A stretch of 64,000 nt of DNA from Geosiphon pyriformis uo1 (Eukaryota > Fungi > Glomeromycota). The DNA lies in assembly GCA_016748015.1 (NCBI GenBank), contig JAAOMT010000586.1:603483-667482 (forward strand), written 5' to 3'. Within the stretch, counting starts at the first letter, position 1. Every line of letters begins with the position of its first letter. The notes under the pieces were generated by a model that saw only the letters and a list, made by a program, of their open reading frames with translations, did not search any database and was not told where the DNA came from. Positions 1,282 through 54,649 of the stretch are shown piece by piece. Position numbers and translations under genes: made by a program.

Positions 1282-4405
<3,124 letters not shown>

Positions 4406-4795
4406 TGTGAAAATAGCTTTGCTACTTGTAAAAAAAAGAAAACTATACAAATTTCTAAATATTTTTTAATTAACAATTATGTTATTTATCAGAAATGAGA
4501 TGAGCGACTACCTCTAGATACTAATCCATGTAGTCTATAAAATGAGGGTTAATAGAAACATTACACACCTCAAAGTTTACAAATAAAAAATCGTGGCATC
4601 TAAGAAAATACTGCTAAAATCTAGAAGATAATTACAACATTATATAGAATAATACATCAAGCATTCATCAGATTCGTAAAAAATTTCTTTCAAAGTAGTT
4701 CGAGAATGAAGTATTGGTAGTACCAAGATCAAGATCAAGTCTATGACCAATTGAATTTGTTGATTCATGATTCAAACTTTTCTAGACAGAGATAT

Positions 4796-6950: not shown

Positions 6951-6999
<49 letters not shown>

Positions 7000-17500: not shown

Positions 17501-17598
17501 TTTTATTTCCATTGGAAATCTTTTCATCGGTCTTGTCACGTGAAATTTATATATTAAGTTTTAACATGGAGACCTTGTCTTTCTACCCGATATTCATA

Positions 17599-31962: not shown

Positions 31963-31981
31963 ATTTATTAACTTGAAAAAA

Positions 31982-34900
31982 AAACTTCTTTCTCTCTTAC
32001 TTCCACAAACCCTCAAAAAATGCTTTTCTGATAAAGAAGTTTTTTATTTTTCCTTATTAGTATTTCACAATTTCTCTTTCTAACAACCCCTTTTTCATGG
32101 ACCTAGAAGCTGTCTCTAGTAGCAACATGTCTAAAAAAAGGCACCAAAGAGTGCTTTTCATGGTCCTGCTGGTGGTTCCTTCTCACAGAAGAAGAGAGTT
32201 GTGCTTGGGAATGTCAAACACTTAGGTGATAAAAAGGATATTTCTTTAGACAGGTTTGAGCTTGGTAACAGTGTGTTCTCTAATGTGGATAGTGTGTCTG
32301 GTAATGAGGAAAGTACTAACATGACTGGCATTAATGTTGAGTCTCTTCTGGATTCAGCCACCAATACTTCTAAAGCCAAGCATGTCAATACTGGTGCCAT
32401 TTTTGGTTCACTTCTTGGTTCTCCTAATTTTGTCATGGATGATGATAATGATGTTTCTCTTCCTCCTTATCTTTCAATCTCTCTGGAAAAAAAATGGATT
32501 GACCCTAAAATTGTTAAGACTCAGGTTAAGGTGTCTGTCAAAAAATCTTTTGCTCTTGATATCAATCTTAGTGCTATGGAAGAGAATTTGACAACAGCAA
32601 AAACTCAGTTAATTAGAAAAATTTTTTCATTGGTCAATAGTTTTGGGGGGGCCATTACTCCCTTAAAATTTGAAGGGATCATCCGATCTATTTTCACTTC
32701 TGAAAAAAGCATGAATATGGCTGTATCTTTGGCCAGAGAAAGAGAGATCGTCATAAACACTAATCTCAAGAAATCAGGAGTGCATTCAGATCAGGCCGTA
32801 GTAATCAAGAAAATTCCCATAAATACACCAAAAAAAATGATCGTTGCCACAGTTGCTGAATTTGGTAATATTAAATCAATTAGGATTCAGTTAATTGGTA
32901 TGTAGCAGAAGGCTATGGTGGAATTTGTCGAATTGAGTCAAGCCAATCTGTTGGCATCAAAATGATCATTCCTAATCGGAAAAGACTCAGTGCATATGGC
33001 AAAAGCTGTGGAAGATCATGATATCTGGGCATCAAGGAACCATTTTAGGGCACTTTTGTTTATCTTACCAGTGGGAACAACTGCATATGATCTTGGTACT
33101 CTTTTGGATAGGGCTGGTGGTAAGACTTGTATCATCAATAGATCTTTGGACACTGGCAATAGGTTTCATTGTGCTGTGGTTGGCTTTGAATCTGAGAAGG
33201 ATTTGGATTCAGCATTTTGCACTGAGCCTGTTTTTGGTAGTGTGCGGCTCTTATAAGCTAAATTGAATTTGGTTCAATGTGGAAAGTGTGGGTATTTTGG
33301 GCATTCAGCTCTTAAGTGTGATGCTCCAATTGGCTCTATGCCATTGTCATCTTTGGTTAAGTCTTTTAAAGATTTTGTTTTTGAGGAAAGACGTTTCCAG
33401 CTGGCCAAGTTATATAAAAAGAAGGAAGTTCCTATCTCCTGCCCTGTTGCCTTTGGTGGAAAGTCTTGGGCCCAAGTGGTTTCAGTGGCTTCCCTCCTCT
33501 TTCATGGTTTTCTTGCTGGTTCCAGCTCAAATCTTTTTTCTTCTTCTTATCATGACATTGGTAATGTTTCTTCTTTGAATAAACACTTGGCCTCTTTGGA
33601 ATGCTCATTTGAGCTTTTTTCTGATCAAGTGTCCACTATTGTTAGACATCTTAATAGTGCTGAACTGGTACCTTTGGTGTCTTCCTCTTTTGTTTTTCCT
33701 CCTGATGTTTCTGCATCTTCGGGTTCAGATTCAGAATTGAATATGGTTTTGGATGGCACTTCAATGCTGTCTGCTCTTTCTTCTTCTACTGTTGATGTTG
33801 GTGTGTATGTTCTCAGTTTTAGTAGCTTTAGGACTCTCACTGGCAAAGTGGGTGGCTTGGAGTCTAAGTTGGCATCTTTGGAGGCTTCTATTGGTTTGGT
33901 GTTAGCACGTTTGGATGGCTTGTGCTCTAGTTCAGGTGCTTTTTCACATTTTTTCTCCAAATGAATAACCTAGTTTAGAAGTTTGCTATGTGTAATGTTT
34001 GGGGTCTCAATATTCCAGCCAAATGGGCAGACGTTGTTCATTGGCATGTAAGCTCTGAAAGTATGGTTTCTTTTGTTACTAAAACAAAGTTGAGGCCTTT
34101 CTCTGGACCATAGATCAAGGATGAATTTGAAGGGGTTCAGATCTTTACTTCTGGTTTGGATGTTGGTTATCTTAGTGCTGGTGTTGCTGTGATTATGAAC
34201 AATTCTTTGGCTCACCATGTTTCTAAGATAGAAGTGGTTCCTGATTATATTATCTTGGTGCATCTTCTGTTCAAAGACAAGCTTTCAGTAATTGTGTTAA
34301 GTTTGTATGCTGGTGCCTCTTTTGGCGTTTGTTTTGGGCAGGTGTTTAAGTTTTATTCTCTCATTGCTAAGACTGTTAATACCAGCAATTTTGTTGTTTT
34401 GGGTGGGGATTTTAATAAAAATAAGTCTGGGAGGAGTGCAAGTTTCAGGTTTTGCCTGGGTCTTGGTCTGGTCAATTTGTTTGCCAGCCATCAGTTGGCA
34501 TTGGCTCCTACATGGTACAACTTGAAAGGGATTAAAAAAACTATTGATTATATTTTAGTTAGTAAGAGTCTGTCATCTGCTGTTGCTAAGCATTGGATTG
34601 GGTCAGTTTCAGATTTTTTTGACATGGATTATAGTGTTGTCATGGTGTCAGTTGGTCTGGATGGGCTTTTGGCTGTTCAGTTGAATAGCTTGCACAGGCA
34701 GGCTAACAAAAATTGTTGGAAGTTCAAGATTAAGGATGTGGATGTGTTCAAGTGTGATAAGTTTAGAGATTGTATTTCGGCAAGGCTTCTGTTGATTAAA
34801 GGCATTTTTGCTAATGCCAAAGCTGGTGGTAATTTAAATACTATGTGGGCAATTTTAGAAAAGAAGATGGTTGAGTCTGCTGATGAGATTTTTTTCAGAC

Positions 34901-37900
34901 TGTGGTTTAGCAAATTTTGTTGCTCTAGGAACAAATATTTTTCGAAGTTCTTTGGATTGGAGTTGCTCGTTACAAAAATTTTTGGTGCGGTCCATTCTGG
35001 CAATATGCTTGAAGTTGTCTGTCTCATAAAAAAATGGTCCACTTTGGATGAGAACAAAGCTTGCGTGTTCTCTAATTTGGTTAGATTGGGTAAGGATAGT
35101 GGAGTTCTTCTTAAGCATCTGTTTTCATTTCACAAGGAATACAGAAAATCAAAAATGTTTGAATCAAAGCTAGCTGAAGAGGCTTCTGTTAGAAAAGCTA
35201 TAAAAAAACACATGGAGAGTTTCACTTCTAATAAAGAAGGCATGATCAAAAGTATTTTGGACTGGTCTTTTCACAAGGTGGTACTTGATTATTTGGTGGT
35301 TGATGGAGGCTTGGTTCTGAAACCTGGGGAGGTGAAGTCTAAAATGAATAAGATTATGGCAGGATGGACAAGGAAGTGGGTGATACTTACAGTAATGCCT
35401 GATCTCTGGGCTTGCCAATATGCGCCTTTGGATTATGTATGGAATGATGCTTTTTCTAGAGTGATGTGTGATATCAGTTTGGATGAACTGCTTTTAGTGG
35501 TTAATGATCTTTCTGATGACAAGGCTGCTGGCTTGTCTGGCATTCCTAATGAATTGTGGAAACATGGTAGTAATATAGTATTGGGTTGCCTTCTGGAGCT
35601 GTTGAATACATGTGTAATTGTTGGTAAGGTGCCTACTTTATGGAGGAGAGCATGGGTGTCAATGATTCTAAAGCCTTATAATTGGGATGGAGTTCTTACA
35701 AATACTCAGCCTATTGCATTAATTAAGACTGCCAGGAAGATTCTCTCTGATAGAATTTTGTCTGCTTGCAGCAAGTTTGGTGTTCTTCATGATGATAATT
35801 TCTCTGTTTTAAAGAGTATGTCTACACAGTCTCCAGTTTTTGCTGTTGGCTCAGTAGTTGAGAATGCTTTAGAGAAGAATTGTGAACTTTGGCTGGTGTT
35901 ACAAGATATGCATAAAGCATATGACTTGGTTGGATGGCATTACTTGGAAGTGAGCTTGAAATGCATTAAGATGTGCAGCAAATTTATTAGTTTCTTCAGA
36001 GGCATACATAAGGATAAAATTAATAGGATCATGATGGATTTTGGTCTGTTGGATGACTATTGTGTACATGATAGTTTGGATCAAGGTGAGGTCTTCTCCC
36101 CCTTTTTCTGGAGGATCTTCTATGATCCACTCTTGTGTGAGGTTAAAAGGCATAAACATTTGTGTGGATACAGGATTGATACTAATTTTATGGTGAAAAC
36201 TGGCAGAATTGAGAATAGTAGTGGGATGTCATTCTTTTTTGCTGCTGGTGCTTTTGTGAATAATACGATTTGGGTGGAAGATTGCCAGGATTGCCAAACT
36301 TCCATGCAGTATGCTCTTAATATTGCCAGTAAATTTTTTTCAATCAATGATATTTCTATTAACAATAAGAAAATAGTGGCTATTCCAATTAATCAGAGTG
36401 TTAAGGTTGTCTCTTTGAGTATTAGTGGTCAACTGATCTCTATAGCAAAAAAAGATGAAGCTCACAGATACCTGGGAATTTTTTTGTCAACTAAGGAGTT
36501 GTCCAAACCTAGTTTAGCCAAGGCATATTTGGATGTTTGTTTCTTTGTCAATGTTGTACTTAAGAAGACTATTATGAACAAGCAGTATTCTTATTTAGTC
36601 TCCACTGTTTTGCAGCCAATTGTTAGCTACAAAATGCAGTTTAGTTTTGTTTTTTCTGGTGTATGCTACAAGTGGAACGTTTTGGTTAGAAAAGGCCTCA
36701 GGTTTAAGACAAGCTTGCTTTGTGATTTCCTGAATGAGACTTTGCATCATCTTTCTCTTTATGGCTTAAAGCCTTTTGACCAGGTACAATCTGAAAGTAA
36801 GGTGGCTGTAGTGATATCTTTTTCAAATGCTCCAGACATTTTTGGTTGGTTGTTTCTTCATTGCTTCTTGGATTTACAGGTTCTTGGGTGGACACCTTTG
36901 AATCCGTTGCAGTTTCCAGTTAAGCTGCTCATTAGTCCTGTGAACAACTTTTTAGCTGGTATGGTCAGAATTTTTTTGAATTGTGAGCTGTCTTTGGCAG
37001 ACTTTCTACCTAGTGCGTTTAGGGACCCTGGTTATTTTCCTATGCCTGAGATTTTGGGGAAATTCTTGTTTCTTAGTTGTGTTCACTCTTTAAAGTGTTT
37101 TGGAGTTGCCTTTGATAACAGACTCCTTGACAAAAAAGGTGCTGTGATGGATTGGAAGACTTTTCATTGTTGGAAAAGGCTTAATTCCAGGGGCCCTGTG
37201 CCTTACTGGTTTAATGTCATATCAAGGTTTTTGCTGGATAAGAGTTCAGTGTCACCTGCTGCTGTTAAAGCTGGTGGTTTTTCAGGCTGTAGCATTTTGG
37301 ATTTTGAACAGTTTGCTTTTGTGTGTAATGGTTTGCTCGAAGTTTGATCTGGCTCTTTTGATGTTTATACTGATGGTTTGTTGAAATTTGCTGGCTCTTC
37401 CAGTGTAATTAGCGGAGCCACTGCTTATTTTCCTGCTTTGGATTAAGAAGTTGGTATTGGTGTTTGTGGGCTTTTATCTTCAACTTTATCAGAATTGCAG
37501 GCTGTGGCTCTTGCTCTGGAATGCATTCCTCTTTCCTGCACAGTGGTTTTGCATCTTGACAGCCAAGCTGCTATTGATGCATGTGTGTCCAAATTAGCTT
37601 TTGCTGTTCCTGATTTGTGCAATTATTGCTGAATCAAAAAAAAATATATTGCCAATTTGATTAAGAATAAAGATCTTGCTGTGAGTTGGGTTAAAGTCAA
37701 GGGTCATTCTAGGGTCTTTGGTAATGATAGAGCAGATACGCTGGCTGGTGAGGCTGCTGGCTCTCCTCTTTCTTTGCCGGCTGGGGTTCGTGAGTGTTTT
37801 TTGTTGGCTAAGAGTACTGCAATTTCAGGTAATGCTCATCACTTTGTCAGAAATGTTTATAAATCTATTTGTCGTGCTCATTGAGAGGCTGGTTCAGATC

Positions 37901-38788
37901 ATGATGTGGTTCCAGTTGCTTTGTTGCAGAGTTTTGATTGGATTGCTTCCACACAGGTTTGGCATCCTGATTTGCACATGTTTGCTGAGTTTACTAGCCA
38001 TAAGTCTGCGATTCTTCACACATACTTGATGAAAGCTCTACACAAAAGGCTGCTGGTGGCTGTCCGCAAAAAGTTATATGATAAGAGTTATTCTGGCGTG
38101 CAATGTTTGTTGTGTAACAAAGTGAAATTGCCAGACTATGTCTTTACATGTTCACAGGATGTTTATATTCAGGGGGACATTTTGTCAGAAGTGTCTGCTC
38201 ATTGGATTTCTCTGACTGGTGCTTGTGACCCATCTTCTTCTTCCATCTTGAGGACTCTTGATCTTTGTCATTCAGATGTCAGCTTGTATTCTGTCATGTG
38301 TAAAAGGTTTGTGCTTAAAGATTGGTGTGCAGAAGTGGTTGGCATTTTTGGTGATGTTAAGAGTGCAACTAGTGTGGTGGTTGACTTTGTAAGATATTTG
38401 GTTAAGTTGCATCAATCCAAGGTGTAGTTGACAAAATCTAAATTTAGAGTGAATATGGAGAGGGTGGACTTGGTTGATGATAATGGTTTGGTAGTGGGTT
38501 TTTCTTGTTGTGGGTCTTCTATGCTTTCAGATAGAGTGGTCAGGTTGCTTGGTATTGTAGAGTCTTTTGCTGTGAGTTTTGGCCATCGCAGGTCTTGTCC
38601 TTTTTTTTCTGGTTTGGATGGTAATCTGTATGTTGTTTTAGGTGTGTAGTGTTGCCTTGTCTGGCCCGAGTGGCTAGTTACATGTAGAGAGTGTGTGAAT
38701 CATGCTTAGTTTGAACCACTTAGTTTGGTTCTATGTACTAGGTAGTGGTTAGGCTTCATTTGTTAAATTGTTTTAATAAAAAAAAAAA
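31982..38788 (+). mobile_element. LINE copy B, full length and disrupted: ORF1 ~32128-33964, ORF2 33961-38649, 3' UTR, poly(A)
   Basis: Same architecture as A: CGKCGYFGHSALKC, a 1063 aa open stretch with the RT motif decayed to FVNN, VYTDG, WVKVKGH..GNDRAD. TSD ATTAACTTGAAAAAA at 31967-31981 and 41094-41108. Confidence 0.95.
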
Positions 38789-38793
38789 TTAAC

Positions 38794-41084
38794 TTTTTTT
38801 TTTTATTTTTTATTAAATTTTAACGAGCGAGACCCAAATACCACCTAAACTATGATATCACAGAAGAGATTACATTATAGGCGTAAATCATGCATTTTCT
38901 ACATGTGATCAGACACTCGGCCTAATCAAAGACTCACTATGCTGAATCAAAAATAGGTGGAAATAATTCCAACTCACGAATTCTCTCAATGATACCATTC
39001 AGATTCCTAGAATCAAAAATAAACTCACTAAGAAACAATCTAATAGACTCAATATTGCCTCTGGTTTCAGCACCAGACATACACCACAAAGCAATAATAT
39101 ACTCAATAGTGTCCTCACTTAAAAAGGAAGGCTTAGCAGCCAGCATACCATTATAATCCATATTACCAAAGTTAACCTCAGATCTAAGACAAGCAATGTC
39201 CTTGGAGATCCCAACCAAGAGATTAGAAAAATTGTTAGCAGCACTCTTCATAGAAATGAGATCCTTCGCAACCTGAACAGCCTTAGCAGCATTATCATTA
39301 AGAAGACGAGACACCAAAGCAACCAAAGAACCAACAGGCTCAACAATAGACTTAACCAGAGCAGCCAAATCCGAAATCTGCTTTTTCAAAGAGTCCAATC
39401 TAGAACCAACAGCAGGATCAGCAACAGAAGCAGCCAAAAGAGCCACCAAAGGAGGAAACTCAGAAAGACCAGAAGAAGCAGCAGTCTTGGCATATGAAGC
39501 AGAACCCACAAAATGAGACCTGAAAATCTTGGGAACCTTGGGAGTGGGGGGTGGAAAAATCTTGCAATCTATGGCCAGATGGCCCATTTCTTGACACCTA
39601 AAGCAGCGCCGGCAGCCAGGAGTTTTCCACCAGATATGGCATTTCTTTAGAGTACCAGTCTTGACTACAGCAGAATCCAAATCGCCTTGAGAGTCAAATG
39701 TAACCAAAGCAAACCAGGAACAACGACCAGAATCAGGAGAACAAGGGATGAAACATGTATGACCACCAATCTGAGAAATCATATCACTGATTTCAAAAGC
39801 AGTACAACCAGGGGGAAGGTTGACCAATTTGGCCTTAAACTTATCACGAGACAAAATAGTCTCATTTTGATTCACCAGAGGGAGGATTCTAACACTATCC
39901 TTGCCCACCAAGATTGACCAATGCTTCAAGACAGACACAGCAGAGTCCAACTTTTCAAAATAAACCACTACATACTGCCAAATGCCAGCAGGCTTCAGCA
40001 CAACACGAGCAACACTACCAAACACACTAAGAGCCAACTTAATGTTAGCAGCAGACACACCCAAAGGTATATCACGCAGCACAACAGCAGCAGAAGAAGA
40101 ACCAAATTCAGAAACCACCAAAGACTTGGCAATTTTGAGGGTGGCCAAACAAACAAAGCTTGTGAGCTCAACTAGAAACGCAGCTTTCAAAGACTGTTGA
40201 GAAGCAAACTCCACACAGAAAAGCTTCACATTGTCTTTTGAAACAGATTTGGCACCCAAGAAACCATGCAAAAACTGAAAAACAGTCTTAACATGAGCCA
40301 ATTTGGTCTTGAAAATAGCACCAGGCACCAGAGTGGAGGCCACCCACCCAGCAAACTTTTGACGACTAGTAATAGTTTCCCAAGCACTATCAGAAGTAGC
40401 ACCAGAAACTAAAGGAGGAGATAAATCAGTTTCCATTTGATCAGCCCAGTTCCCAAGAACAGGTGACCCAACAGAAGAAGATTGTTTTGCTTCTAAAACC
40501 GGCGATGATCTGCTGGAAGACACCATATTTGGCAACACAGCCAGTGATTGATCTTGGCCCATCTTGGATGACGTGTTGAATGATGCTATGGAGATCTCAC
40601 CTAAGATCTCATTGGGAACCACAAAGGGGTTCGGTGTAACAATAGCAGAGACAAGCGACTGCTCCCACTTTTCTAAACTTTTGGTCTTTTTGACCATTTT
40701 TTTTGAAAAGGTGGTGCCAGAAGCACCAGGTGTTAAGTCTATAGAGGGGAAAACCAGCTTATTTACTGGTCTATTATTAAAAACTTTTGGGCTCTTAGTC
40801 GGGGTGGAGGCAACACTGGGATTAACCCAAGTGTGTCTCTTTGAAGAAACTTTGACTGGTGAAAAACCAGCCAAAGATAGGGAAGTTGATTCAGTGGCTA
40901 CCAAAGGCAGCTTTTCATGATTACTGGGTAAGGGGAAGGCTTCTAAAACATTTTGCCTAATTGCTTCTACAACAGAAAGAGCTCCTCTGGTTAAAATTTT
41001 ATTAGATATCTTAGGACAGATATCAGATGCAGCCTTTTTACTCTTAGCTCTGGTCGTGGTCATAAAATTAAGGAGACAAAGAGT
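38794..41084 (-). mobile_element. ORF1-only (HAL1-like) non-autonomous retroelement, copy C (best preserved)
   Basis: 21-nt 5' leader, one 708 aa ORF, LINE-type 3' UTR, poly(A), and TSD AAAATTAACTT at 38785-38795 and 41091-41101. There are no APE or RT sequences. Confidence 0.88.
38937..41063 (-). CDS. Uninterrupted 708 aa ORF1/gag-like RNA-binding protein (S/P/K-rich N-terminus, RRM-like repeats, CCHC knuckle, C-terminal coiled coil)
   Basis: CFRCQEMGHLAIDC knuckle. WSILVGKDSVR, RDKF..KL..LPPG.TA and GG.TC.I..S..G align with LINE ORF1 WSFLIGKDSVR, RDQF..LL..LPVG.TA and GGKTCVINRS..G. Confidence 0.85.
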   Translation of the reverse strand: MTTTRAKSKKAASDICPKISNKILTRGALSVVEAIRQNVLEAFPLPSNHEKLPLVATESTSLSLAGFSPVKVSSKRHTWVNPSVASTPTKSPKVFNNRPVNKLVFPSIDLTPGASGTTFSKKMVKKTKSLEKWEQSLVSAIVTPNPFVVPNEILGEISIASFNTSSKMGQDQSLAVLPNMVSSSRSSPVLEAKQSSSVGSPVLGNWADQMETDLSPPLVSGATSDSAWETITSRQKFAGWVASTLVPGAIFKTKLAHVKTVFQFLHGFLGAKSVSKDNVKLFCVEFASQQSLKAAFLVELTSFVCLATLKIAKSLVVSEFGSSSAAVVLRDIPLGVSAANIKLALSVFGSVARVVLKPAGIWQYVVVYFEKLDSAVSVLKHWSILVGKDSVRILPLVNQNETILSRDKFKAKLVNLPPGCTAFEISDMISQIGGHTCFIPCSPDSGRCSWFALVTFDSQGDLDSAVVKTGTLKKCHIWWKTPGCRRCFRCQEMGHLAIDCKIFPPPTPKVPKIFRSHFVGSASYAKTAASSGLSEFPPLVALLAASVADPAVGSRLDSLKKQISDLAALVKSIVEPVGSLVALVSRLLNDNAAKAVQVAKDLISMKSAANNFSNLLVGISKDIACLRSEVNFGNMDYNGMLAAKPSFLSEDTIEYIIALWCMSGAETRGNIESIRLFLSEFIFDSRNLNGIIERIRELELFPPIFDSA

Positions 41085-41725
41085 GAAATTAAAATTAACT
41101 TGAAAAAATAAATATAAAATTTTAATTTAATAGATAGTTTTATGTATTAATTTAAATAATGTAAATTTAAAAATTATTATTTTAATATATTAGAATTTTT
41201 GGATATTTATTTTTAAAATTGGTTATTAGAAAAATAATAAGTTTTATTAATTTTTGTAAAATAAATTAAAAATAATATAGTAAATAAAATCTAAATTAAG
41301 ATAATTGCTTCTTAATAAATTGTAAAATAATAAAATAAAATATATATTTTTTATTTAATATAATATTATATATATTTTTTGGTTATATAAAATATTCTAA
41401 TAATTTTAATTATTTTTAGGTTTTATTAATATTTTTAAAATTTTTAACCCAAATTAATATAATTATGAATAGTTAATATATTAATAAAGTTTTTATAAAA
41501 AAATTTTTGCAAGTTTTAATTTTTATGTTTTTTTAAAAATTATTATATTCTTTTATTAACATAAAAATTAAATAATTATTGTTGATTAATTCCAAGTATT
41601 TTTAATAATATTTGTATAATAAATTTACAAATTTTAAATAATTTGTTTTTGCAAATTTTAATTTTGTTAATTTTATTAATTATTATTAATAATATTTTAT
41701 TTTTTATAGATTATAACTTAATAAA

Positions 41726-44005
41726 ACTCTTTGTCTCCTTAATTTTATGACCACAACTAGAACAAAGAGTAAAAAAGCTGCACCTGATATCTGTTCTAAG
41801 ATATCTAATAAAATTTCAACCAAAAAAGCTTTCTCTGTTATAGAAGCAACTAGGCAGAATGTTTTAGAAGTCTTCTCTTTACTTAGTAATCATAAAAAGC
41901 TGCTTTTAGTAACTACTGAAGCATCTTCCTCATTTTTGGCTGGTTTTTTACCAGTCAAAGTTCCTTCAAAGAGACACACTTGGATTAGTCCCAGTGTTGC
42001 CTTCATCCCTACTAAGAGCCCAAAAGTGTTTAATAATAGACCAGTTAACAAGCTGATATTTTTTTTTATAGCTTCAGTATCTGGTGCTTTTAGCATCTTC
42101 TTTTCAAAAAAATGGTCAGAAAGACCAAAAGTTCAGAAAAGTGAGAGCAGTCGCTTGCCTCTGCTATTGTTACACCGAACTCCTTTATGGTTCCCAATGA
42201 GATCTTAGATGAAATCTCCATAGTATCATCTAGCATGTTGTCCAAGATGGGCCAAGATCAACTATTGGCTGTGTTGCCAAATATGGTGTCTTCTGGCAGA
42301 TTATTGCCAGTTTTAAAAGCAAAGCAATCTTTTTTTGTTGAGTTACCTGTTCTTAAGAACTGGACTGACCAGATGAAAACTGAATTATCTTCTCTTCTAG
42401 TTTCTGGTCCTACTTCTGGTGGTGCTTGGAAAACTATTACTAGTTGTCAAAGATTTACTGAGTGGATGGCCTCCACTCTGGTGTCTGGTGCTACTTTTAA
42501 GATCAAATTGGCTCATATTAAGGCTGTTTTTCAGTCAATACATGATTTTTTGGGTGCAAAGTCAGTATCAAAGGACAATGTGAAGCTGTTTTGTGTGAAG
42601 TTTGCTTCTCAAGTGTCTTTGAAAGCTGTGTTTTTAGTTGAGTTTACAAGCTTTGTACACTTGGCCACTCTCAAAATTACCAAGTCTTTGGTAGTTTCTG
42701 AGTCTGGTTTCCCTTCTGCTGCTGTTGTATTGTGTGATATGCCCTTGGGTGTGTCTGCTGTTGACATTAAGACAGCTCTCAGTGTGTTTGGTAGTGTCAC
42801 CCATGTTGTGCTAAAGTTTGTTGGTGTTTAGCAATATGTGGTAATTTATTTTGAGAAATTGGACTCTATTATGTCTGCTTTGAATCATTGGTCAGTTTTG
42901 GTGGGCAAAAATAATGTTAAAATCCTCCCTCTGGTGAATCAAAATAAGATTATTTTGTCTTGTAATAAGTTTAAGGCCAAGTTAGTTAATTTTTCTTTTG
43001 GATGCACAGCTTTTGAGATTAGTGATATGATTTCTCAAGTTGGTGGTTGGACATATTTTATCTCTCGTTCTCCTAAGTCTGGTTATTATTTCTGGTTTGC
43101 TCTGATTACATTTGATTCCCAAGCTAATTTGGACTCTGCTATTGTCAAAACTAGGACACTAAGAAAATGCCATATTTGATAGAAAACTCCTAGTTGTTAA
43201 CATTGTTTCAAGTGTCAAGAGCTGAACTATCTGGCTGTAGACTATAAGATTTCTTTACCTCTCTCTCCCAAGTTTCCCAAAGTGTTTATATTACACTTTG
43301 TTGGTCTTAAGTCTTATGCTAAGACTTCTGCTTCCTTGGGTTCCTCTGAGTTTCCACCTTTGTCATCTCTTGTCTTTTTTTCAGTTGTTGTTGGTAATTC
43401 TTTGATGCTGTCCTATCTGTTTTCTTTGGAATCTGATTTAACTAAGCTTTCTGCTTTGGTTGAGTCTATTGTTAAGCTTATTGGCTCTTTGGTTACAACT
43501 TTTAAACAGTTTATTAATAATGATTTAGTTTCAAGTAGTGCTCTTGGTCTTAGAATCAATGAGATTTTAGTACATATGGGTTCTTTTAGTAGGACTGTTA
43601 GTAAGTTAAGGAGGGAAGTGGTTTCTTTGAAAAAGGAATGCTGCATGGAAGACATTGATATGTCTGGTGATTCAGAGCTTCTGCCTGTTGTGGGTGATAA
43701 GGTGTTTTCCAACTTAATGTTCCTTTGGGAGCATGAGTCTGTTGATATTAAAACTGATTTCTTTAAAACTACCAAGTGGCTAATTGGTTTGATTTCTTAC
43801 AATGCAACTTTGTTTTCTGTCATTCAGAAGATGTCATCTCTGGATAAGTTTTCTTTTATAGCATTAATATAGTGTGTTTTTGACTGGTCCGAATGGCTGA
43901 TCACATGTAGAAAACACATAATTAGCACCTAGTTTAGATTGATTCTTTGATGTATTGTTTTAGATAGCTTTTGGGCCTCACTTATTAAACTTTAATAAAA
44001 AAAAA
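41726..44005 (+). mobile_element. ORF1-only element, copy D (disrupted; ORF 41747-43872; different C-terminus from C)
   Basis: Identical leader ACTCTTTGTCTCCTTAATTTT-ATG, MTTTRTKSKKAA..., one frameshift and several stops, LINE-type 3' UTR and poly(A). An imperfect TSD beginning ATAGATTATA lies at 41706 and 44006. Confidence 0.88.
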
Positions 44006-44204
44006 ATAGATTATATTTTATAAAAAATATTAAATATTACAAATAGATATATTAAATTATATTTTATAATTTAGTATTGTAATTTAATTATATTTTTTAA
44101 AAATTTTAATAAATTTAAAAATTTTTATGTTTAAATTTTTGTATAAAAAACAGAAATTTAATTATTAATAATTTTTAATATTTAGTATTTTTTATAGTAA
44201 TTAA

Positions 44205-44928
44205 TTTTTTTTTTTTATGAGTGTAGTCCAAACATTATCTAGTACTATATATCAAAGAAATAATCTAAACTAAGTGTAAATCATGTATTTTCTATATGTG
44301 ACCAACCACTTAAGCCAATTAGAACAATACTACACAGTTATATGAACAGAGACTGAATTACCAACACCTGAAAAAAATACACAAAATTTACAAAAACCAA
44401 AATATACATCAAAAGTCTTAGTAATGCCAAGCAATTTGACCACACTAGCAGAAAATTTCAAAGCCAGGCCAGACACCAAGATAAAAGCTGAACTATTCAA
44501 AGAAATCAGTCTGTTCTTTTCCATATAGGCATGATATTTAGCATGAACCAACCAGATGTTATTCCTAAAAGCAAGACCAAGAGAGTACATAAATTTGACA
44601 ATCTTTAAATTAGCAATCTTGGAATTATAAAACATAAAAACAGTCTTGTTAAGCCAACCATTAAAAACAAAATTCTTATAGAAAGCTGTATACATAGATA
44701 AATTAGAAGCACAAAATAACAACAGTTGTAGCACACTAAAAGAGGAACAAGAGAGACCAAAAAGTGCCTTCCAGGAAGCCACATGGGAGTCTATTATATA
44801 GTAACAAGCAGAAATGTTTATCTCACAAGAGAAAATATGATCTGATACCTCCATATCACCACAATATAAACACAACACACTGGAATAGCTTCTATCATAA
44901 AAGTGTTTCTGAATGACCACAAGCAGCC
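44205..44928 (-). mobile_element. 5'-truncated LINE (ORF2 C-terminus, 3' UTR, poly(A)), closest to copy A
   Basis: CLYCGDMEVSDHIFSC...GNSVSVHITV* closely follows the end of A, and the 3' UTR is A-type. Candidate TSD AATTAATTT at 44199 and 44929. Confidence 0.88.
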
Positions 44929-45074
44929 AATTAATTTATTTTGATTATTTTTATCTTTTTAATAAATATTTAATTATTAATAAATTAATTTTATATTATT
45001 TTTGTGTTTTTTATTAATAATAATAATAAAATAAAATAATAAAATAAAATAAAAATAAAATAAAAAAAAGAAAT

Positions 45075-48000
45075 AAACTTTTTTCTCTTTTACTTTTCAA
45101 ATCCTCTAAAGAGCAAATTTTTCGAAAAAGAAGTTTTTAATTTTTTTTTGCAAATATTTCTCAATCAAATAATCATTTTGTAATAAATTTGGCTGCTGTT
45201 TTAGGCAGTACTATGTCTAAAAAAAAAATATTTAAAGGAGTTTTTTATGGTCTTGTTAAGAATTTTTTTTTCCAAAAAAAAAAGTTTCATTTAATAATAT
45301 TAAGCATTCTAAAGATGAGAAAGATATTTCCTTAGTCAAACCTGGTCCTGGTAATAGTGTGTTTTTAGCTATGGACAGTATATCTGGCAATAGTAAAAAT
45401 AATAATATTATATTTAGTGTTGGCAATAATTCTCTTCTTGGTTTGGTGGCAAACATTCTTAAAGCTAAAAAAATTAATACTGGTCTGGTTTGTGTTTCCT
45501 CTTTTGGCTTGATCAATTATAGCATAAATGAAAATAATGAATTTTTCTCTTTTTTTTTTAAGATATCTTTCAACAAAAAGTGAGTTGATCCAAAAATTAT
45601 CAAGACTTAAGTTAAAGTGTCCATCAAAAAATCTTTTGCTCTTAATATTAATTTTAATACTGTGGAAGAAAAATCTATTATAGCAAAAACTCAAGTTGTT
45701 AGAAAATTATTCTTATTAATCAATAATTTTGGGAGGGGAGCTATTACTTTTTCAAAATTTGAAGAGATTATTCAATCTACTTTTACTTCAGAAAAAAGCA
45801 TAGAAATAGTCATTTTATTGGCCAAAAAAAAGGGGATTAACATAAACAATAATCTTAAAAAACAAAAAATAAGATCAGATTAGGCTGTGGTAATCAAAAA
45901 AATTCTCATAAACATGCCTAAAGATATGATCATTGCTGCAGTATCCAAATTTGGGAAGATTAAGTCGATTAAAATTCAATTGATTGAAATATGGCAAAAG
46001 ACTGTGATAAAGTTTGCTGAATTAAATCAAGCTGATTAATTGATCTTAAAATAATCATTCCTAATCAGAAAATATTCTGTACATATAGTCAAAACTATAA
46101 AAGATTGTAAGATTTGGGTGTCTAAAGATTGGTTCAGAGCACTTTTGTTTATCTTGCTGATAGGAACAACAAGACATGATCTTAAGACTCTTTTAGAAAG
46201 AGCTAGTAAAAAAATTTGTGTTATAAATAGATCTATAGAAACTGGTAATAAGATTTACTGTGCTGTGGTTGACTTTAACTCTGATAAGAATTTGGAATCT
46301 GTCTTTTGCACAAAGCTGATCTTTGGTAGTATAAGGCTCTTTTGGACTAGAATGGATTTGGTTTGTTGTAAAAAATGTGAATATTTTGGATATTTAGCTC
46401 TCAAATGTGATGTGTCAAGTATATCTGTGCTGCCATTGTCAAAAAAATTCTATAAAAAGATTTTTTCTAAGGAAGTTTACTTTCAACTTGCCAAGTTGTA
46501 TAAAAAAAAAATGTTCTAATTTCTTGCCCTGCTGTCTTTGGTGGCAAATTTTGGGCCCAAGTGGTCTTACTTGCTGGTTCTTCTGGTGATACTTACTTCA
46601 GTTCTGGTCCTGGTTTCTTTCCTTCTGGTGTCTTAAGTTTGGGTGGTACTTTTTATCTTATCTTTGCTGATAACTCATTTTTGAATGCTTATTTAGCCTC
46701 CTTAAAACACTTCTTAAAACTTTTAATGGATTAAGTTTCTGGTATTGTGTACAAATTCAGCAATTTGGAATTGGTGCTTCTGGCTCCTTTTTTTTTTTTT
46801 TCATGTTTAACTACTCCAATAACTGCCAATTTGAATTTGGGTTTGACTATGGTTTTGAACAGCCCTATTTTAGTGCTTCTATTTCCTTCTTTTATTGTTT
46901 TTAATGTCTTAATTCTGGGTTCAAGTAGTTCAAAAGTGCTGACTACTAAAATAGGCTGTTTAGAATCTAAGTTAGTGGCTCTTGAGGTCTCTGTTAATTC
47001 AGTTTTGATAAAATTAGATCAATTGTGTACTAAATTAAATTTTTATGTGCCTTTTTTTTCCCAATAAGTAATTTGGTTTGGAAAATTGCTACATGTAATG
47101 TTTGTGGTATCAATGTACTGACTAAGCAGAAAAATATTATACATTGGCACATGAACTCTAATAATATAATTTCAATAATCACAGAAATAAAATTGAGATC
47201 TAGTATTAGGCCATAGATTATAACCAAATTTGATGGTATGTGAGTGTTTACATTTGGTTTGAATAAGAGTTTTTTTGATGCTAGAGTGATAATTATTATG
47301 AACAATTCTCTGGCTTGACATGTTTTTAAGATTAGGAGATGTCTGATCATGTTATTTCAGTTCAGCTTCTTTTCAAAAGCAAGCTTTTGGTCATAATTTT
47401 AAGCTTGTATGTTGGTGTTTTTGCTGAAACTAGGTTTGGTTAGGCAGTTGAAATTAATTTTTTTATTGCAAAAACAGTTAATGTCAGCACTTTTGTGGTT
47501 TTGGATGGGGATTTTAATAAAAATAGTTCTAAAGAGTGTGAGCTTTCAATTTTGTTTGGATCTGAATTTGGTCAATTTACTTGAAGGCTATTATTTGGCC
47601 AAAACTTTCACATGGAGCAATTTAAGAGGAGTTGAGAAAATTATTGATTACATTTTTGTTAATAAGTATTTATTGTTAGTAATTGCTAGTCATGAAATTG
47701 TTTCTGCTTCTGATTTTTTTAATACTAATTACAAGACTGTTATGATGTCAGTTGGTCTGAATAGACTTTTGGATTTTCATTTGAATAGTTTGCACAAACA
47801 AGCTAATAGAAATTATTGAAAGTTTAAAATTGCTGGTGCAGATGTTCTTAAATGGGCTTGTTTTAAAGAATGTATTTTTGTCAAGTTTTTTTCTGTAGTT
47901 GGTAAGTTTTTATTTGCAAGTGCTAGTGGAGATCTTAATACTATGTGGAATTTGCTGAAGAAGATAATAGTAGATTTGGCTAATAATGTTTTTTCTAAAC

Positions 48001-51000
48001 ATTGATTTTGTAATGTCAAATATTCTTTTAACAGACAATCTTTTAAGTTTTTTAAACTGAAACTAATGGTTGCCAAAGTAATTAAGTCTCTTTAATCTGG
48101 TAATTTTTTTAGGACTAATTTATTTTTTGGTGCTTGGTTAATTGTTGATAAAGTTAAGACTCTTAAAATTTGAGACATATTAGATAATAGCACCAGTGGT
48201 ATAAATGTTTTTAGTTACTTGTTAAGGATTAGAAAAAGTTACTATTATTCCAAGATGCATGAATCTAAGACTACTAAGTCTGCTGTTATTAAGTGTGCCA
48301 TTAATAAGAAAATGAAAAATTTTTGCTTAAACAAAGACCATATAATCAAGAGTATATTAGATAAGCCATTTTATAAAATAATTTTTGATCATTTAATTGT
48401 TGATGATAAGCTGGTTTTTGATCTTGATAATATTAAATCTAATGTTAATATTATAATGGAGGAGTGAACTAAGAAGCATTTAGTTTCTGAATCTTTGTTT
48501 GATCTTTAAGCCTGCCAATATGCCTTTTTATAATATGTGAATAACAATGTTTTCTCTGATATTATGAATGTTGTTAGTTTTAATGAGTTGGTTTAAGTTG
48601 TTAGATATTTACCAAATAGAAAAACTACTGATTTCAGTGGTATTTCTAATAAATTGTAAAAGCATTGTAATGACCATATTCTCAGAGGTTTTTTGGATTT
48701 TTTGAATTTGTGTTTGAAGTTGAATGCTGTTCCAATTTTATGGAAAAGAGCATAAGTTTTAATAATACCCAAACCTTATAAATGGAATGGCATCTTGATG
48801 AATACTCATCCTATTGCTTTGGTTGAGACTGTTCATAAGATTTTTTTTAAAATTCTCTCAGATCAAATCTCTTTTGTCTGCAATAAATTCAGTATTCTCT
48901 ATGGGAATAACTTCTTTATTTTAAAAAGTACTTTGACACAGTCTCCTATTTTTGCAGTTGGTTTAGTGGTTGAAGATGCTTTGAAAAAAGACAAAAAAGT
49001 TTGGTTGGTTTTGCAGAATATGCACAAGACATATAATTCAATTGGTTGATATTATTTAAGAGCTAATTTGTGACATATCAAAATGTGCAAGAGATTTATT
49101 GAGTTTTTTGGTGGAATTCATAAGGATAGATTGAACAAAATCATAACAGATTTTGGCCTTTCAGATAGATATTAGGTGTTTAATGGTTTTGATTAAGATG
49201 AGATGTTTTCTTTCTTTCTTTGGCAAATTTTTTATGACTTTTTTTTTGTGCAAAGTCAAAAGACAGAAGAGTATATGTGGTTATCAAATTAATACTAAGT
49301 TTGTGATCAAGATAAAGAGAATTAATAATGTGAGTAGAATGATTTCTTTTTTCATGACTAAAGCTTTTGTGGATGACATTATCTGGGTTGGGAATAGCCA
49401 AGCTGCTACACAATTTATTTTAGACATTATTAGTGACTTCTTTTTAATTAATATTATTTCAATTAATAATGACAAAATTGTTGTCATTCCTATTAATAAG
49501 AGGATTAAAAATGCTGTTCTCAGGATTAGTGGATTCTCTATTTCAATTGCAAAGTGTGGTGTATTTCACAGGTACTTGAGTATCTTCTTGTCTACTAATG
49601 GTTTATTCAAGCCCAGTTTGGCTAAGACTTAATCTGATATAAAGTTTTTTTTCAATATGGTGTTGAGAAAAACTATCTTGGATAAGCAGTTTTTGTATTT
49701 GGTCTCAGCAGTTCTGCAGCCCATTGTTGGCTACTGCACTCAGTTTAATTTTATTTCTTTCACTGTTTACCAGTGTTGAAATGTTTTGGTTAAGAAAGAT
49801 TTTAAGTCAAAGACTAGACTGTCTCGTAATTTTTCAAATAAAGTGCTGTATTATCTTTCATTATATGGTTTGAAAACATTTAAGCAAGTTCAAACTAAGG
49901 AGAAGTCAGCTTCAATTGTTATTTTTACTAATGCTTCTGGAATTCTTGGTCAGCTTTTTGAGCACAGATTTTTGGATTTGTAGGTTTTGGGCTGGGCTTT
50001 TCTGAACTCCTTACAATATCCAGTATAGTTGTATGTTAGTTTTTCAAACAATTTTTTGGCTGAAATTGTGCATGTTTTTTTGGACAATAGTATTTCTATG
50101 ACAAACAATTTGCTCTGTATTTTTTTTTGTTCTGGCAGGTTTTTTGTTTCAAGTGTTTTGGGGCCATTATTGTATTATGATTGTATTAATTTCTTAAAAA
50201 GATTTGGTGTGCCTTTTTATAACAGACTTTTGGACAAATGCAGTAGAATTTTAGATTGGAGAACATTCCAAAATTAAAAAAAATTAGACTTCAGAGGATT
50301 TGTGCCCTTTTGGTTTGTTTTGGTGTCAAAGTTTTTACATGATTCTGTGCTTACATTAGCATTTTCTAACAGAGATTCTGTGTTGAATGTTAATAATGTT
50401 TTGTTATCTGGTCAGTTTTTTGATATTAAGAGTAGTTTGCTTAAAGTCTGGTCAAATATTTTTACTGTATATACAAATGGTTTCTTAAAAGAGCTTGGTT
50501 TTGTTAATGTGGCTAGAAATGCTGCTGCATTCTTTTCTGAGATTAATTTGGGCATTAAAGTTAAGATTAATAAGTTTTTGTCTTTTATAATGGCAGAATT
50601 ACAGGCTATTGCTTTGGCTTTGAAATGTGTGCCCTTTTTTTGTTTAGTGGTAGTGTGTTTGAACAGTTAGACTGTATTGAATACATGTGTTTCAGAGTTG
50701 AAGTTATCTGGTCCCAATTTTTGTAGTAATTGTTAAATAGAGAGAAGACATATTGCAAATTTGATTGTTAATAAGAACATCTCTGTGGTCTGGTTAAAGG
50801 TTAAAGACCACTTAAGTATTTTGAGTAATGTTTGCACAAATGCTTTGATAGAAGTGGCTGCTTATTCTTCTTTGCTGTTGCTGATTAATGTATGTAAACA
50901 TTTTATTATGGTTAATAATCTGCTGGTTTCTGATAACATTTATTATTTTATTTGGAATATTTTTAGATTGGTAAATCATGCACATTGGAAAATTAGTTCT

Positions 51001-51901
51001 GGTTCTAGGATTTTAGGTGGTTTTTTGGTTTATGATATTGATTGGATTCATACTATAGCAGTTTGGCATCCAGATTCATATATGTTGTTAGGATTTACAA
51101 GTAGGGTTTTAGCTAGTTTGTGTACTTATTTTATGAAAACTGTCTATAAAAAACTGTTTATTGCTATTAGGAAGAGACTTTATAACAAATATTATCCTGG
51201 TGTTTTATGTTTACATTGTAAAGAGGTTAAGTTTTCTGATCACATGTTTATGTATAGTAAAAAGTCTATCTCTCATAAGACAATTTTGTTTGAATGTATT
51301 TCATTTTGGAGGTTTCTGGCTGGTTCTCATTTTTTTGCCTTTTTTATGATTGTGGAATTTTTTCTTTTGTGTTTATTTGATGTTAATTTGTATATACTTT
51401 TTTGCAAGAGCTTTGTATTTGTGGGATAGTTTGAAGAGATAATACAGATTTTTGAAGATCATAAAAAGACTGCTCAGATTTTGGTTAATTTTACATGTAA
51501 TTTGGGTATATGACACTGTTCTGAGTTGTAGAGATTCAAATTTAGATTTAGAGTAGATATAAAGAAAAATAATTTAATTGGTGATTCAGAGGTGGTGCCT
51601 GTGATATTTGTTGGCTTGGTGCTGGTTCTATTAGATAGTGTGATTAGGTTGATTGGTATTAATAATTTCTTTGGAATTAGTTTTAGTTTCTGTATATCTT
51701 GCTTATTTTTTTTTAGTTTTAGTAGTAAAGCTACTGTTTGTATAGGGGCTTAGTGTTGCTTTAATTAGTTTGAGTAACTAGTTACATGTGATAAATATGT
51801 GAATTGTATCTAGCTGGAATTCATAGTTTTGACTCTGTATACTAGATAATAATTGGGCTGTATTCATAAAATGTTAATAAAAAAATAAAAAATAAAAAAA
51901 A
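45075..51901 (+). mobile_element. LINE copy E, full length and heavily decayed: ORF1 ~45213-47067, ORF2 ~47064-51753
   Basis: The 5' end resembles B. It has a decayed knuckle CKKCEYFGYLALKC, WKIATCNV, FVDD, AELQAIALAL and CLHCKEVKFSDH, then a 3' UTR and an A-rich tail. Confidence 0.92.
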
Positions 51902-51918
51902 GTTGATATTTTGTTAAT

Positions 51919-54190
51919 TTTTTTTTATTAAAATTTAATAAATACAGCCCAATTATTATTTAAAAATTAAAAACAAACTAAATGTTTTAAGATTAAATAT
52001 GGTTTACGTGTTTTTTACATGTAACTAGTTATTTAAACCAGTTTAGACTATGTTATATTAATACAATAAAAGAAAACTTACTTAAAACCAACATCTTTTA
52101 AACTATATTAAACAATTTAACACTATAAAAAATCAACTCAACTAGCTATTTGGCTGTTTTTAAGAGATTAATTTTAATATTATTAGGCTTATGTATCCAA
52201 AGAGACATTAAATTAAAAAATAAATTATTATTAATATCAATTGATAGTTTTAAATTATCAAACATATTAATATTATCTATGCAGTATTTTTTTTTCAATA
52301 AAACTATTTTTTTTTAGCTTATTAACAATCTTGCTAAAAAAGTCTAGATAAATTATAAGCTTATTAATCTTAAGATTAAAAACACTACTTAAAATTAAAT
52401 TACTATTAATAATTTATTTAAATACAAAATTAAGAAATTAATAGACTTAATAATTAATTCAATCAAAGCAAAAAATTTAGCCAAATCAGATTTCAAAAAA
52501 ATCAATCAAAAAAACACTATAGAATTATTAATAATCATAAAAAAAAGAGCAGGAATTATCAAAAACAGAAACTTAAAAGAACTTAAAAGAACAGAAGCTT
52601 TGATATAAAACTTAAAATTTATAAAACATTATGTAAACATTTTAAAAACCTTAAAACTCTTGGAAAAAAAAGGTATAGATACTTTATAGTCTACAAATAG
52701 ATGGTTAATTTCTTAATATTTAAAATAATACTAACAATCAGAAATTTTTTATCAAATATAGCACTTTATTAATGTATTAATTTTGACTATTACAATATCC
52801 AAATTAGCCTGGAATTTAAATATAATCAGAGCAAATCAAAAACAATGACCAGAATTAGGAAAGCAAAAAATAAAACATGTTTAACTACTAATCTAAAAGA
52901 TTATATTACTAATTTTAAAGACAATATAGCCAAAAGAAAAATTAATTAACTTGGTTTTAAACTTATTATAAGACAAAATAGTCTTATTTTAATTAACCAA
53001 AAGAAGAATTCTAATAATATTTTTACTTATTAACACTAATTAATAATTTAAAACAGATATAACAGCATTTAGCTTTTTAAAATAAACAATAATATATTGT
53101 TAAACACTAGTAGATTTTAATATAATATAAACAATTTTACTAAATACACTAAGTGTTATCTTAATATTAACAACAAATATACTCAAAAACATATTATGCA
53201 GCATAATAATAACAAAAAAAGAACCAAATTCAAAAACCACCAAAAATTTGGCAATTTTAAAAGTAGTCAAATAAACAAAACTTGTAAACTCGACCAGAAA
53301 TACAGCTTTTAAAGACTTTTGAAAAGCAAACTCTATGCAGAAAAGTTTCATATTGTCTTTTAATACCAATTTTGTATCCAGAAAACCATGTACAAATTAA
53401 AAAACAGTTATAATATAAACCAATTTAATCTTAAAAGTAATATTAAACACTAAAGTAAAAATTATCTATTTAACAAACTTTTAATAACTAGAAATAGTTT
53501 TTCAAATACTATTAGTGATAGCACCAAAAATTAGCAAAAAAAATAATTCAGTTTCCATTTGATTAACTTAGTTCTTAAAAACAGATAATTAAACAAAAAA
53601 CTGTTGTTTTGCTTTTAAAATTAATAATAATTTGTTAAAAGACATTATATATAGCAATACAGTTAATGGTTAATTTTGGCCTATTTTAAATAATAGACTA
53701 AATAATATAATAAAAATTTCATTAAGAACTACAAAAAAGTTCAGTATAACAATAGCAGAAACAAGTAATTGTTTTTATTTTTTTAAATCTTTGGTTTTTT
53801 TGACTATTTGTTTTAAAGAAGTAGTGCCAAAAGCACTAAGTATAAAAATTATAAAAAAAAATCAGTTTGTTAACTGATTTGTTATTAAAAACTTTTAGGC
53901 TCTTAGAAAGAATAAAAACAATACTGAAATTAATCCAAATATGTTTTTTTAAGAAAAGTTTAACTAGTAAAAAACCAGTTAAAGATAAAAAAAATGCTTT
54001 AATAATTATCAAAAGTAGCTGTTTACTATTACTAGCCAAGAAAAAAGCTTTTAAAATATTCTGTCTAGCTGTTTTTACAATAAAAAAAACTTTTTTGGTT
54101 AAAATTTTGTAAAATGCCAAAAAAAATATTAGTCACAACTTTTTTATTCTTTGTTCTAATTATAATTATAAAATTAAGAAAACAAAAAGT
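51919..54190 (-). mobile_element. ORF1-only element, copy F (strongly decayed, D-type C-terminus)
   Basis: KDNMKLFCIEFAFQKSLKAVFLVEFTSF and KVFNNKSVNKLIFF match C and D. The decayed leader ends at the same position. It has a 3' UTR and poly(A), with a possible TSD containing TTTTGTTAAT at ~51909 and ~54203. Confidence 0.82.
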
Positions 54191-54459
54191 TTTATGATTT
54201 TTTTTTGTTAATACTTATAATTAAAATTTATTTTTTTAATGTGTTAAAATTCTTAAATATTTATATTTAACATTAATTATTTAAAAAAACAATATAAATA
54301 GAATAAATATTTTTAATAATATAAGATATTTTGGTATTTTTAATGATTTTTATATTTTTTTTAGTTATTATTAATATTTTTGGCTTTTTAAAATTCTTAA
54401 TATTATATAATTTTTCTAATTTTAATATATAATTAATTAATATATATTATATATTTTAT

Positions 54460-54595
54460 ATTTTATAATTATAATTAAAACAAAAAATAAAAAGTTTTAA
54501 ATATTATTTTTTTTATAGTAATTAATAAAATTTTAACAAAAAAAATTTTTTTTGTTGTAAAAACAATTAAGCAAAATATTTTAAAAGTATTTTTT
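54460..54595 (+). mobile_element. Very eroded 5' fragment of a fourth ORF1-only element
   Basis: AATAAAATTTTAACAAAAAAAATTTT...TTGTAAAAACAATTAAGCAAAATATTTTAAAAGT aligns to D AATAAAATTTCAACCAAAAAAGCTTTC...TATAGAAGCAACTAGGCAGAATGTTTTAGAAGT, with mostly C>T and G>A differences. Confidence 0.6.
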
Positions 54596-54649
54596 TTAAA
54601 TATATATTTTTTTTTATTGTAATAATAAGTAGAATAACTAAAAACTAAA

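Follow-up and report, generated by a model that had tools for sequence, protein, structure and literature searches.

In a 64,000-nucleotide (nt) stretch of the genome of the fungus Geosiphon pyriformis (hereafter the window, drawn from a 128-Mb, A/T-rich assembly), we describe a retroelement that consists of a single open reading frame (ORF) resembling the first frame, ORF1, of long interspersed nuclear elements (LINEs), followed by a LINE-type 3′ end. We consider it probable that this element represents a HAL1-like, non-autonomous, protein-coding family of non-long-terminal-repeat retrotransposons, with a 2.28-kb polyadenylated unit that would be moved in trans by the protein of the second LINE frame (ORF2p). 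An intact 5′ end is found in at least ~490 copies of the family, and its RNA-binding core is under purifying selection between subfamilies. Because the element has LINE-type ends and encodes no endonuclease or reverse transcriptase (RT), it most likely borrows the copying enzyme of the resident LINEs.

ORF1-only copies in the window

Three full-length copies (C, D, and F) and one short fragment lie among LINEs that we call A, B, and E. Their features, including target-site duplications (TSDs) and untranslated regions (UTRs), are as follows.

38795..41084, minus strand: copy C, full-length ORF1-only element of 2.29 kb, the sole copy in the window with an intact ORF
41064..41084, minus strand: 21-nt 5′ leader of C, ACTCTTTGTCTCCTTAATTTT, directly before the ATG
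38937..41063, minus strand: ORF of C, 708 amino acids, uninterrupted
38823..38936, minus strand: 3′ UTR of C; its conserved core, GGCCGAGTGTCTGATCACATGTAGAAAATGCATGAT, has two potential hairpins and is common with LINE tails
38795..38822, minus strand: A-rich tail or poly(A) of C
38785..38794, minus strand: 3′ TSD of C, AGTTAATTTT, within the poly(A)/TSD junction of LINE B
41091..41100, minus strand: 5′ TSD of C, AGTTAATTTT, separated from the element start by six extra nt (41085-41090)
41726..44005, plus strand: copy D, full-length with a broken ORF, a different C-terminal module, and a LINE-A-type tail
41706-41715 and 44006-44015: TSD of copy D, ATAGATTATA
51919..54190, minus strand: copy F, full-length with a broken ORF, a D-type body, and a LINE-B/61212-type tail
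51909-51918 and 54203-54212: TSD of copy F, ATTAACAAAA
54523..54587, plus strand: short fragment, 80% identical to C nt 81-145

A preliminary description of this DNA had placed the three copies of ~2.3 kb where we locate them, to within 1 nt. It had also listed one fragment, which exists as a match but extends over merely 65 nt. As that description stated, the copies begin alike, have a 21-nt leader before the ATG, and carry a LINE-type 3′ UTR that sets in straight after the stop codon. The common start is ACTCTTTGTCTCC (mutated in F), and the 3′ UTR shows homology to the 3′ ends of several LINEs, LINE A and LINE B among them. It was likewise right that only C retains an uninterrupted ORF. Copies C and D are 81% identical over nt 1-1764, while F is 69-70% identical to both and has decayed mainly by transitions. 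Copy D corresponds to gene model P0108 (100% identity over the C-terminal third).

The TSD of C, which had been called clear, is so; those of D and F had been called imperfect, but exact 10-mers flank all three copies. Between the 5′ TSD and the element start, the three copies have 6-12 extra nt, mostly A-rich (41085-41090, 41716-41725, and 54191-54202). Such extra nucleotides may have been added without a template or by template jumping, or they may be short pieces of the donor flank. At loci L002-L030, sampled elsewhere in the genome, the same junction has 4-16 extra nt that are copy-specific, mostly A-rich, and often end in AAA. The pair formed by LINE E and F, spaced 13.1 kb from LINE B and C, was considered as a segmental duplicate of the latter, but the flanks and TSDs of F and C differ; consequently, C and F stem from separate insertion events.

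A dispersed family in the Geosiphon genome

A DNA search with copy C gave 1613 first-look candidates in the Geosiphon genome, of which only the best-scoring matches were scored (40 in this search; 40-62 across searches). Thirty-eight of the 40 span nt 1 to ~2285 at 89-94% identity, with invariant breakpoints; the remaining two are a 5′-truncated copy starting at nt 83 (L013) and an adjacent 338-nt 5′ fragment. Among 30 loci that were fetched, the 5′ start is common to 29 and an A-rich tail to all 30, while the 708-amino-acid ORF is kept in 2 and broken in 28. A pattern made of the 25 nt around the leader and ATG, searched with up to three mismatches, occurs at 489 genome sites, compared with none for the reversed control; the 5′ start of the 6.8-kb LINE occurs at 437.

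The A/T-rich DNA produces a high chance background of short repeats, and flank repeats were therefore required to hold at least four non-A bases and were compared with mismatched pairs of 5′ and 3′ flanks. Exact repeats of at least 10 nt flank 13 of 29 copies, against 3.7% of the mismatched pairs. The preliminary description had proposed to count copies that have the 5′ end in common as well as poly(A) and TSDs, and had named a genome-wide lack of TSDs and poly(A) as evidence to the contrary; both marks are present in copies across the genome. The copies are dispersed singly and in both orientations inside contigs of 0.1-2.7 Mb, and neither the scored copies nor the pattern sites form head-to-tail arrays at chromosome ends.

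All 120 relatives of the C ORF that were listed are "hypothetical proteins" of Geosiphon pyriformis. More than 100 such models in the public annotation are copies of the element, and gene counts for this species are likely inflated. In some models the element is fused to other sequence: P0123 is joined to a LINE, P0029 carries kinase domains, and P0106 carries retrotransposon gag domains. Some of the element's gene models are possibly joined to host-like domains.

An ORF1 lineage separate from the sampled resident LINEs

Pfam identifies an RNA-recognition motif (RRM_1, residues 415-468) and a zinc knuckle (zf-CCHC, 486-501) in the C ORF, and neither an RT nor an endonuclease. The protein is laid out as an N-terminus (1-215), a helical region, two RRM-like domains (323-480), the CCHC knuckle (486-501), and a helical C-terminal module (506-708). 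The secondary structure is taken from an AlphaFold2 model of low confidence (mean predicted local distance difference test score 35), in which the N-terminus is also a low-confidence part. Where the preliminary description had given an RRM/CCHC/coiled-coil ORF of ~700 residues, the first two elements were recovered by Pfam, and the coiled coil corresponds to two long helices (residues 550-629) predicted in that low-confidence model. A sequence search of the PDB with the C ORF returned one marginal RRM match. Profile alignment with hhalign against LINE ORF1s covers residues 216-581 (E = 4.6e-49), which takes in the helical region, both RRMs, the knuckle, and the start of the helical segment; the C protein is thus a true full-architecture relative of LINE ORF1 proteins (ORF1p).

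This relationship is nevertheless distant, as had been claimed: identity to the neighboring LINE ORF1s is 25-29% and confined to the RRM-CCHC region. When the LINE ORF1s of the window and of 14 more LINE loci are compared with C, the match is limited to residues ~323-515 and the identity to 20-39%, which is also the range for all 21 Geosiphon LINE ORF1s sampled. The N- and C-terminal parts of the C ORF have no detectable counterpart in the sampled LINE ORF1s. Outside Geosiphon, no match above ~37% identity was present among 1.84 billion representative sequences. A maximum-likelihood tree built from the RRM-CCHC region places the ten ORF1-only sequences together in a clade (support 100/99), and a 100/100 branch parts this clade from all 21 Geosiphon LINE ORF1s, which include the proteins P0247, P0264, and P0265. 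The clade lies on the same side of the tree as ORF1s from metagenome contigs; two of these, P0245 and P0213, were checked, and in both cases genes for an apurinic/apyrimidinic endonuclease (APE), RT, and RNase H follow. Since the ORF1-only clade falls outside all 21 LINE ORF1s, this phylogeny supports the earlier claim that the element is not a recent internal deletion of a local LINE.

It may be asked whether a LINE with a closely similar ORF1 followed by ORF2 exists elsewhere in the genome. None was found among the 21 LINE ORF1s and the long gene models. No long gene model that was checked joins a C-like ORF1 directly to ORF2, and long models with RT, APE, or RNase H domains carry a LINE-type ORF1 of their own. 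One candidate, P0123, proved to be an ORF1-only copy that the gene predictor had merged with a complete LINE lying downstream, which has a separate ORF1. Others among these candidates have an RRM only or no Pfam domain and have the appearance of fused tandem copies.

These results bear on a simpler explanation, in which a resident LINE with the same ORF1 repeatedly gave rise to the copies, by recent internal deletion or by splicing, and there is no self-propagating lineage. The LINE-like nucleotides at the 5′ end and a LINE 3′ UTR that begins exactly at the stop codon are what the loss of ORF2 would leave, and a rare parent could be missed when 40-62 of thousands of candidate matches are scored. 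However, every one of the 21 LINE ORF1s lies at 20-39% identity beyond the 100/100 branch, and whole terminal parts of the protein have no detectable LINE counterpart. Repeated deletion also accords poorly with breakpoints that are invariant in 38 of 40 matches, with several deeply diverged ORF1-only subfamilies, and with purifying selection on the core between those subfamilies. We therefore judge such an origin very unlikely.

Selection and decay

As the preliminary description had suggested, the ratio of nonsynonymous to synonymous divergence (omega) was compared between subfamilies. Within the C subfamily, Nei-Gojobori omega is 0.85-0.92; these copies are subject to the same mutation bias, and the range is taken as the neutral baseline. 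In the core (residues 216-505), omega is 0.31 (95% confidence interval 0.22-0.44) between C and its sister copy L045 and 0.32 (0.22-0.45) between C and D. A core omega of ~0.3 against a baseline of ~0.9 indicates that the RNA-binding core mattered for propagation, an argument also made for HAL1 (PMC3627910). Individual copies, on the other hand, decay: counted against the per-column majority of 30 aligned copies, they diverge by 4-7.5%, with C>T and G>A accounting for 78% of the substitutions.

Selection of this kind could in principle reflect a cellular function, if the copies were a host gene family derived from a LINE ORF1 (compare L1TD1 or the EKA genes of Blumeria) and multiplied as retrogenes. 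The core omega between subfamilies would suit such a family, as would the >100 copies annotated by NCBI as hypothetical proteins. Host genes would not be expected, however, in hundreds of dispersed copies with their own TSDs, poly(A), and identical UTRs, some of them inserted into the tails of other transposons. Moreover, 28 of the 30 sampled copies are ORF-broken and decay neutrally (omega ~0.9), and the conserved LINE tail has no obvious use to a host gene. A host-gene origin is, in our estimation, extremely improbable.

Ends shared with LINEs and proposed mobilization in trans

The evidence for a LINE partner lies at the two ends of the element. From the stop codon onward, the 3′ UTR (~115 nt) aligns with LINE tails at 59-75% raw identity, or 83-93% when only transversions are counted. 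The common core reads TGAYTGGCC...GGCTGRTCA CATGTAGAAA..CATG and can fold as two hairpins: 88.5% of alignment cells pair, compared with 18-41% when the partners are slid. A two-hairpin 3′ structure is thus compatible with the tail alignment. A metagenome contig carries a related LINE that lacks this tail motif. At the 5′ end, the first ~16 nt of the element resemble ACTTCTTTCTCTCCTT, one indel and one mismatch apart; ACTTCTTTCTCTCCTT is the start of a full LINE (L046, element 683-7495) that has a 5′ UTR of ~130 nt, a broken ORF1, an ORF2, and the same class of tail. LINE B has the same start, at 31984.

From these ends, we infer mobilization in trans by LINE ORF2p, and the following sequence of steps is proposed. 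Transcription would begin at the invariant 5′ end of the element, ACTCTTTG, which agrees with the LINE start over its first ~16 nt. The element's own ORF1p would coat its RNA in cis, as purifying selection on the RNA-binding core suggests. The ORF2p of a resident 6.8-kb APE-RT-RNase H LINE would then recognize the common 3′ tail, with its predicted hairpins, together with poly(A), to judge from the homology of the tails. Target-primed reverse transcription into A-rich targets would complete the cycle, and its expected traces (poly(A), TSDs of ~10 nt or more, and A-rich sites) are seen. Template switching would allow the parasite to keep up with any LINE that happens to be active.

The same shared ends could also speak for a partnership of another kind. 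The ORF1-only element and the LINE have comparable numbers of 5′ ends (489 and 437, respectively), both ends are common to the two kinds, and the two are frequently adjacent, as might be seen in a mutualistic two-component system in which the ORF1-only element supplies an ORF1p needed by, or useful to, the LINEs. However, every sampled LINE has its own RRM-CCHC ORF1 upstream of ORF2, so that no missing function is evident, and insertion into A-rich tails explains the adjacency. Mutualism is therefore very improbable indeed, and parasitism on LINE ORF2p is the explanation we prefer.

Several points nevertheless weigh against this explanation. The search for a parent LINE covered only the 21 LINE ORF1s and the annotated proteome. 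The omega values were obtained by plain Nei-Gojobori counting in sequences strongly biased toward transitions and are readable only against the within-subfamily baseline. Covariation in the hairpins is no higher than in shuffled alignments. No LINE copy in the window has a complete ORF1 and ORF2 together, so that none could be recognized as a currently active helper. Finally, with copies at 4-7.5% divergence and the ORF kept in 2 of 30, the family may now be largely or wholly inactive.

Mosaic structure of the element

The ORF1-only lineage is old and modular, with subfamilies that have a replaced C-terminal module and differing types of LINE tail. Identity between C and D is 75-90% over nt 1-1640 but drops to ~40% over nt 1760-2050, where transversions reach 36-39%. 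The two C-terminal modules share only 29% amino acid identity, yet they are homologous (hhalign E = 2.4e-26), and neither type matches the C-termini of the sampled LINE ORF1s. Synonymous divergence of C from L045 and D rises from 0.17-0.22 in the N-terminal third to ~0.5 in the core and at least 0.6 in the C-terminal module, and this stepwise increase suggests several recombination events between ORF1-only lineages.

The tails, too, are of several types. The tail of copy D is of LINE-A type (74-75% raw identity; 90-93% counting transversions only), copy F has a D-type body over its whole length with a tail of LINE-B/61019/61212 type, and C and L045 each have their own tail variant. The ORF end common to D and F is followed by an A-type tail block at two loci and a B-type block at five, on different contigs. 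Four of the five B-type loci, F among them, have F's own ORF-end and tail features. Local gene conversion from LINE E was considered as a source of F's tail and rejected, since the features of F recur at three other loci; this recurrence shows that the tail type is inherited and not a local conversion artefact. Template switching during reverse transcription is the likeliest cause of both the module and the tail swaps.

A more far-reaching interpretation is that the element is an ancient recombining parasite with no living LINE parent in Geosiphon. Its core groups with LINE ORF1s of other organisms, and its 3′ tail would have been swapped repeatedly, and its C-terminal module once, by template switching as it passed from helper to helper. 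We put this forward tentatively, as a possibility somewhat short of even. If it is true, the element would be a protein-coding counterpart of the tail exchange seen in short interspersed nuclear elements (SINEs), and the lineages of ORF1p and ORF2p could evolve separately.

The surrounding LINE array

The ORF1-only copies lie in a nest of LINEs that fills 25-64 kb of the window, with APE-RT ORF2 matches at 27333-30524, 34156-37347, 47259-50343, 56841-59782, and 62635-63993. The three LINEs next to the copies are as follows.

25900..31960, plus strand: LINE A, ORF1 from ~25927, ORF2 27333-30524, tail end at ~31960, tail type that of copy D
31984..38788, plus strand: LINE B, 6.8 kb, candidate helper type, broken ORF1, same class of 3′ tail
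45880..51903, plus strand: LINE E, ORF1 from ~45884, ORF2 47259-50343, poly(A) meeting copy F tail to tail

The ORF2 of LINE B is an open frame of 1063 amino acids (34156-37347) with APE and RT signatures in Pfam. Its 14-nt TSD, TTAACTTGAAAAAA, is split by the insertion of copy C, which lies at the junction with the poly(A) of LINE B; the other copy of this TSD is at 31969-31982. From this nesting of TSDs, LINE B was inserted beside the tail of LINE A first, and C later.

Tail-to-tail placement recurs along the array. Copy C faces the poly(A) of LINE B (38780-38800), and F faces that of LINE E (51870-51925). Near 61.1 kb (61019-61212), two LINE 3′ ends face one another, and ~190 bp separate the end of copy D from a piece of LINE tail in inverted orientation (44006-44345). 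These placements suggest that the endonuclease prefers the T-rich strand opposite an existing poly(A).

Base composition is uneven. GC content is 18-30% in LINE E and F (44000-56000), where C>T and G>A changes abound, and 38-40% in LINE B and C (32000-41000). This pattern, together with the excess of such changes among the family copies, is consistent with deamination of methylated cytosine, or a process resembling repeat-induced point mutation, that acted unevenly along the array. The region adjoining the repeat nest, at 14000-18000 of the window, is extremely A/T-rich (13-23% GC). The hairpin core TGATCGGCTCGAGTGGCTGGTCACRTGTAGAAA also occurs after unrelated upstream sequence, at 596-654 (plus) and 15112-15170 (minus) of the window and at L012:5043-5101 (minus) and L029:4715-4773 (plus). 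These additional sites may belong to further LINE families or to other non-autonomous elements with the same tail.

Comparison with known systems

That ORF1p works in cis, whereas ORF2p may be borrowed in trans, is known from nature chiefly through ORF1-only half LINEs, which are documented in mammals and at Drosophila telomeres. Full-text literature searches, with incomplete coverage and with Repbase and Dfam outside their scope, returned no account of a comparable element, either for Geosiphon or for fungi in general. The strategy itself is known in animals, from HAL1 and HeT-A, and the apparent novelty is its occurrence in a fungus. A family of ~500 copies in an early-diverging fungus would extend the half LINEs and show that the strategy is general. 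It differs in its type of ORF1p and combines a LINE tail of predicted structure with a core under selection and with exchanges of both tail and C-terminal module. The family would also offer a natural system for asking which parts of the LINE RNA and of ORF1p set the choice of helper.

In Dictyostelium, TRE5-A.2 has lost ORF2, retains ORF1, and is mobilized in trans, and it is a near-identical deletion derivative of its parent. By contrast, no parent with a similar ORF1 was found for the Geosiphon element among the sampled LINEs. The telomeric Jockey-clade elements of Drosophila (HeT-A and its relatives) include ORF1-only lineages that depend on the ORF2 of other families and that also spawn new ORF1-only lineages (PMC13534243). 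The Geosiphon element is likewise an ORF1-only lineage, but its copies lie inside many large contigs and are not telomere-specific, and its ORF1 type and presumably its LINE clade differ.

In its tail, the element resembles SINE-LINE pairs, in which common 3′ tails serve "stringent" recognition and SINEs exchange tails (PMC5786205). Here, too, the 3′ tail is homologous to those of the partner LINEs, and subfamilies carry different types of LINE tail. However, SINEs are short, polymerase III-transcribed units with a head, body, and tail, whereas the Geosiphon element, at 2.3 kb, encodes a protein (ORF1p) and is presumably a product of RNA polymerase II.

The closest parallel is HAL1, a mammalian half-L1 that encodes only ORF1p, has lost ORF2, and reached high copy number (Bao & Jurka 2010, as summarized in PMC3627910). 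Its coding capacity was long kept by selection, which implies ORF1p acting in cis and ORF2p in trans (PMC3627910). The Geosiphon element shares the ORF1p-only structure, the high copy number, and selection on the coding region. Nevertheless, it is not HAL1 in the strict, L1-derived sense, since both the type of ORF1p and the partner LINE differ. Its host is a glomeromycotan fungus and not a mammal, its ORF1p has an RRM-RRM-CCHC arrangement in place of the coiled coil, RRM, and C-terminal domain of the L1 type, and its partner-type LINEs encode APE, RT, and RNase H. Whereas the ORF1 of HAL1 derives from L1, that of the Geosiphon element is not close to any sampled resident LINE ORF1, and beyond poly(A) the element carries a specific LINE 3′ tail with predicted hairpins.

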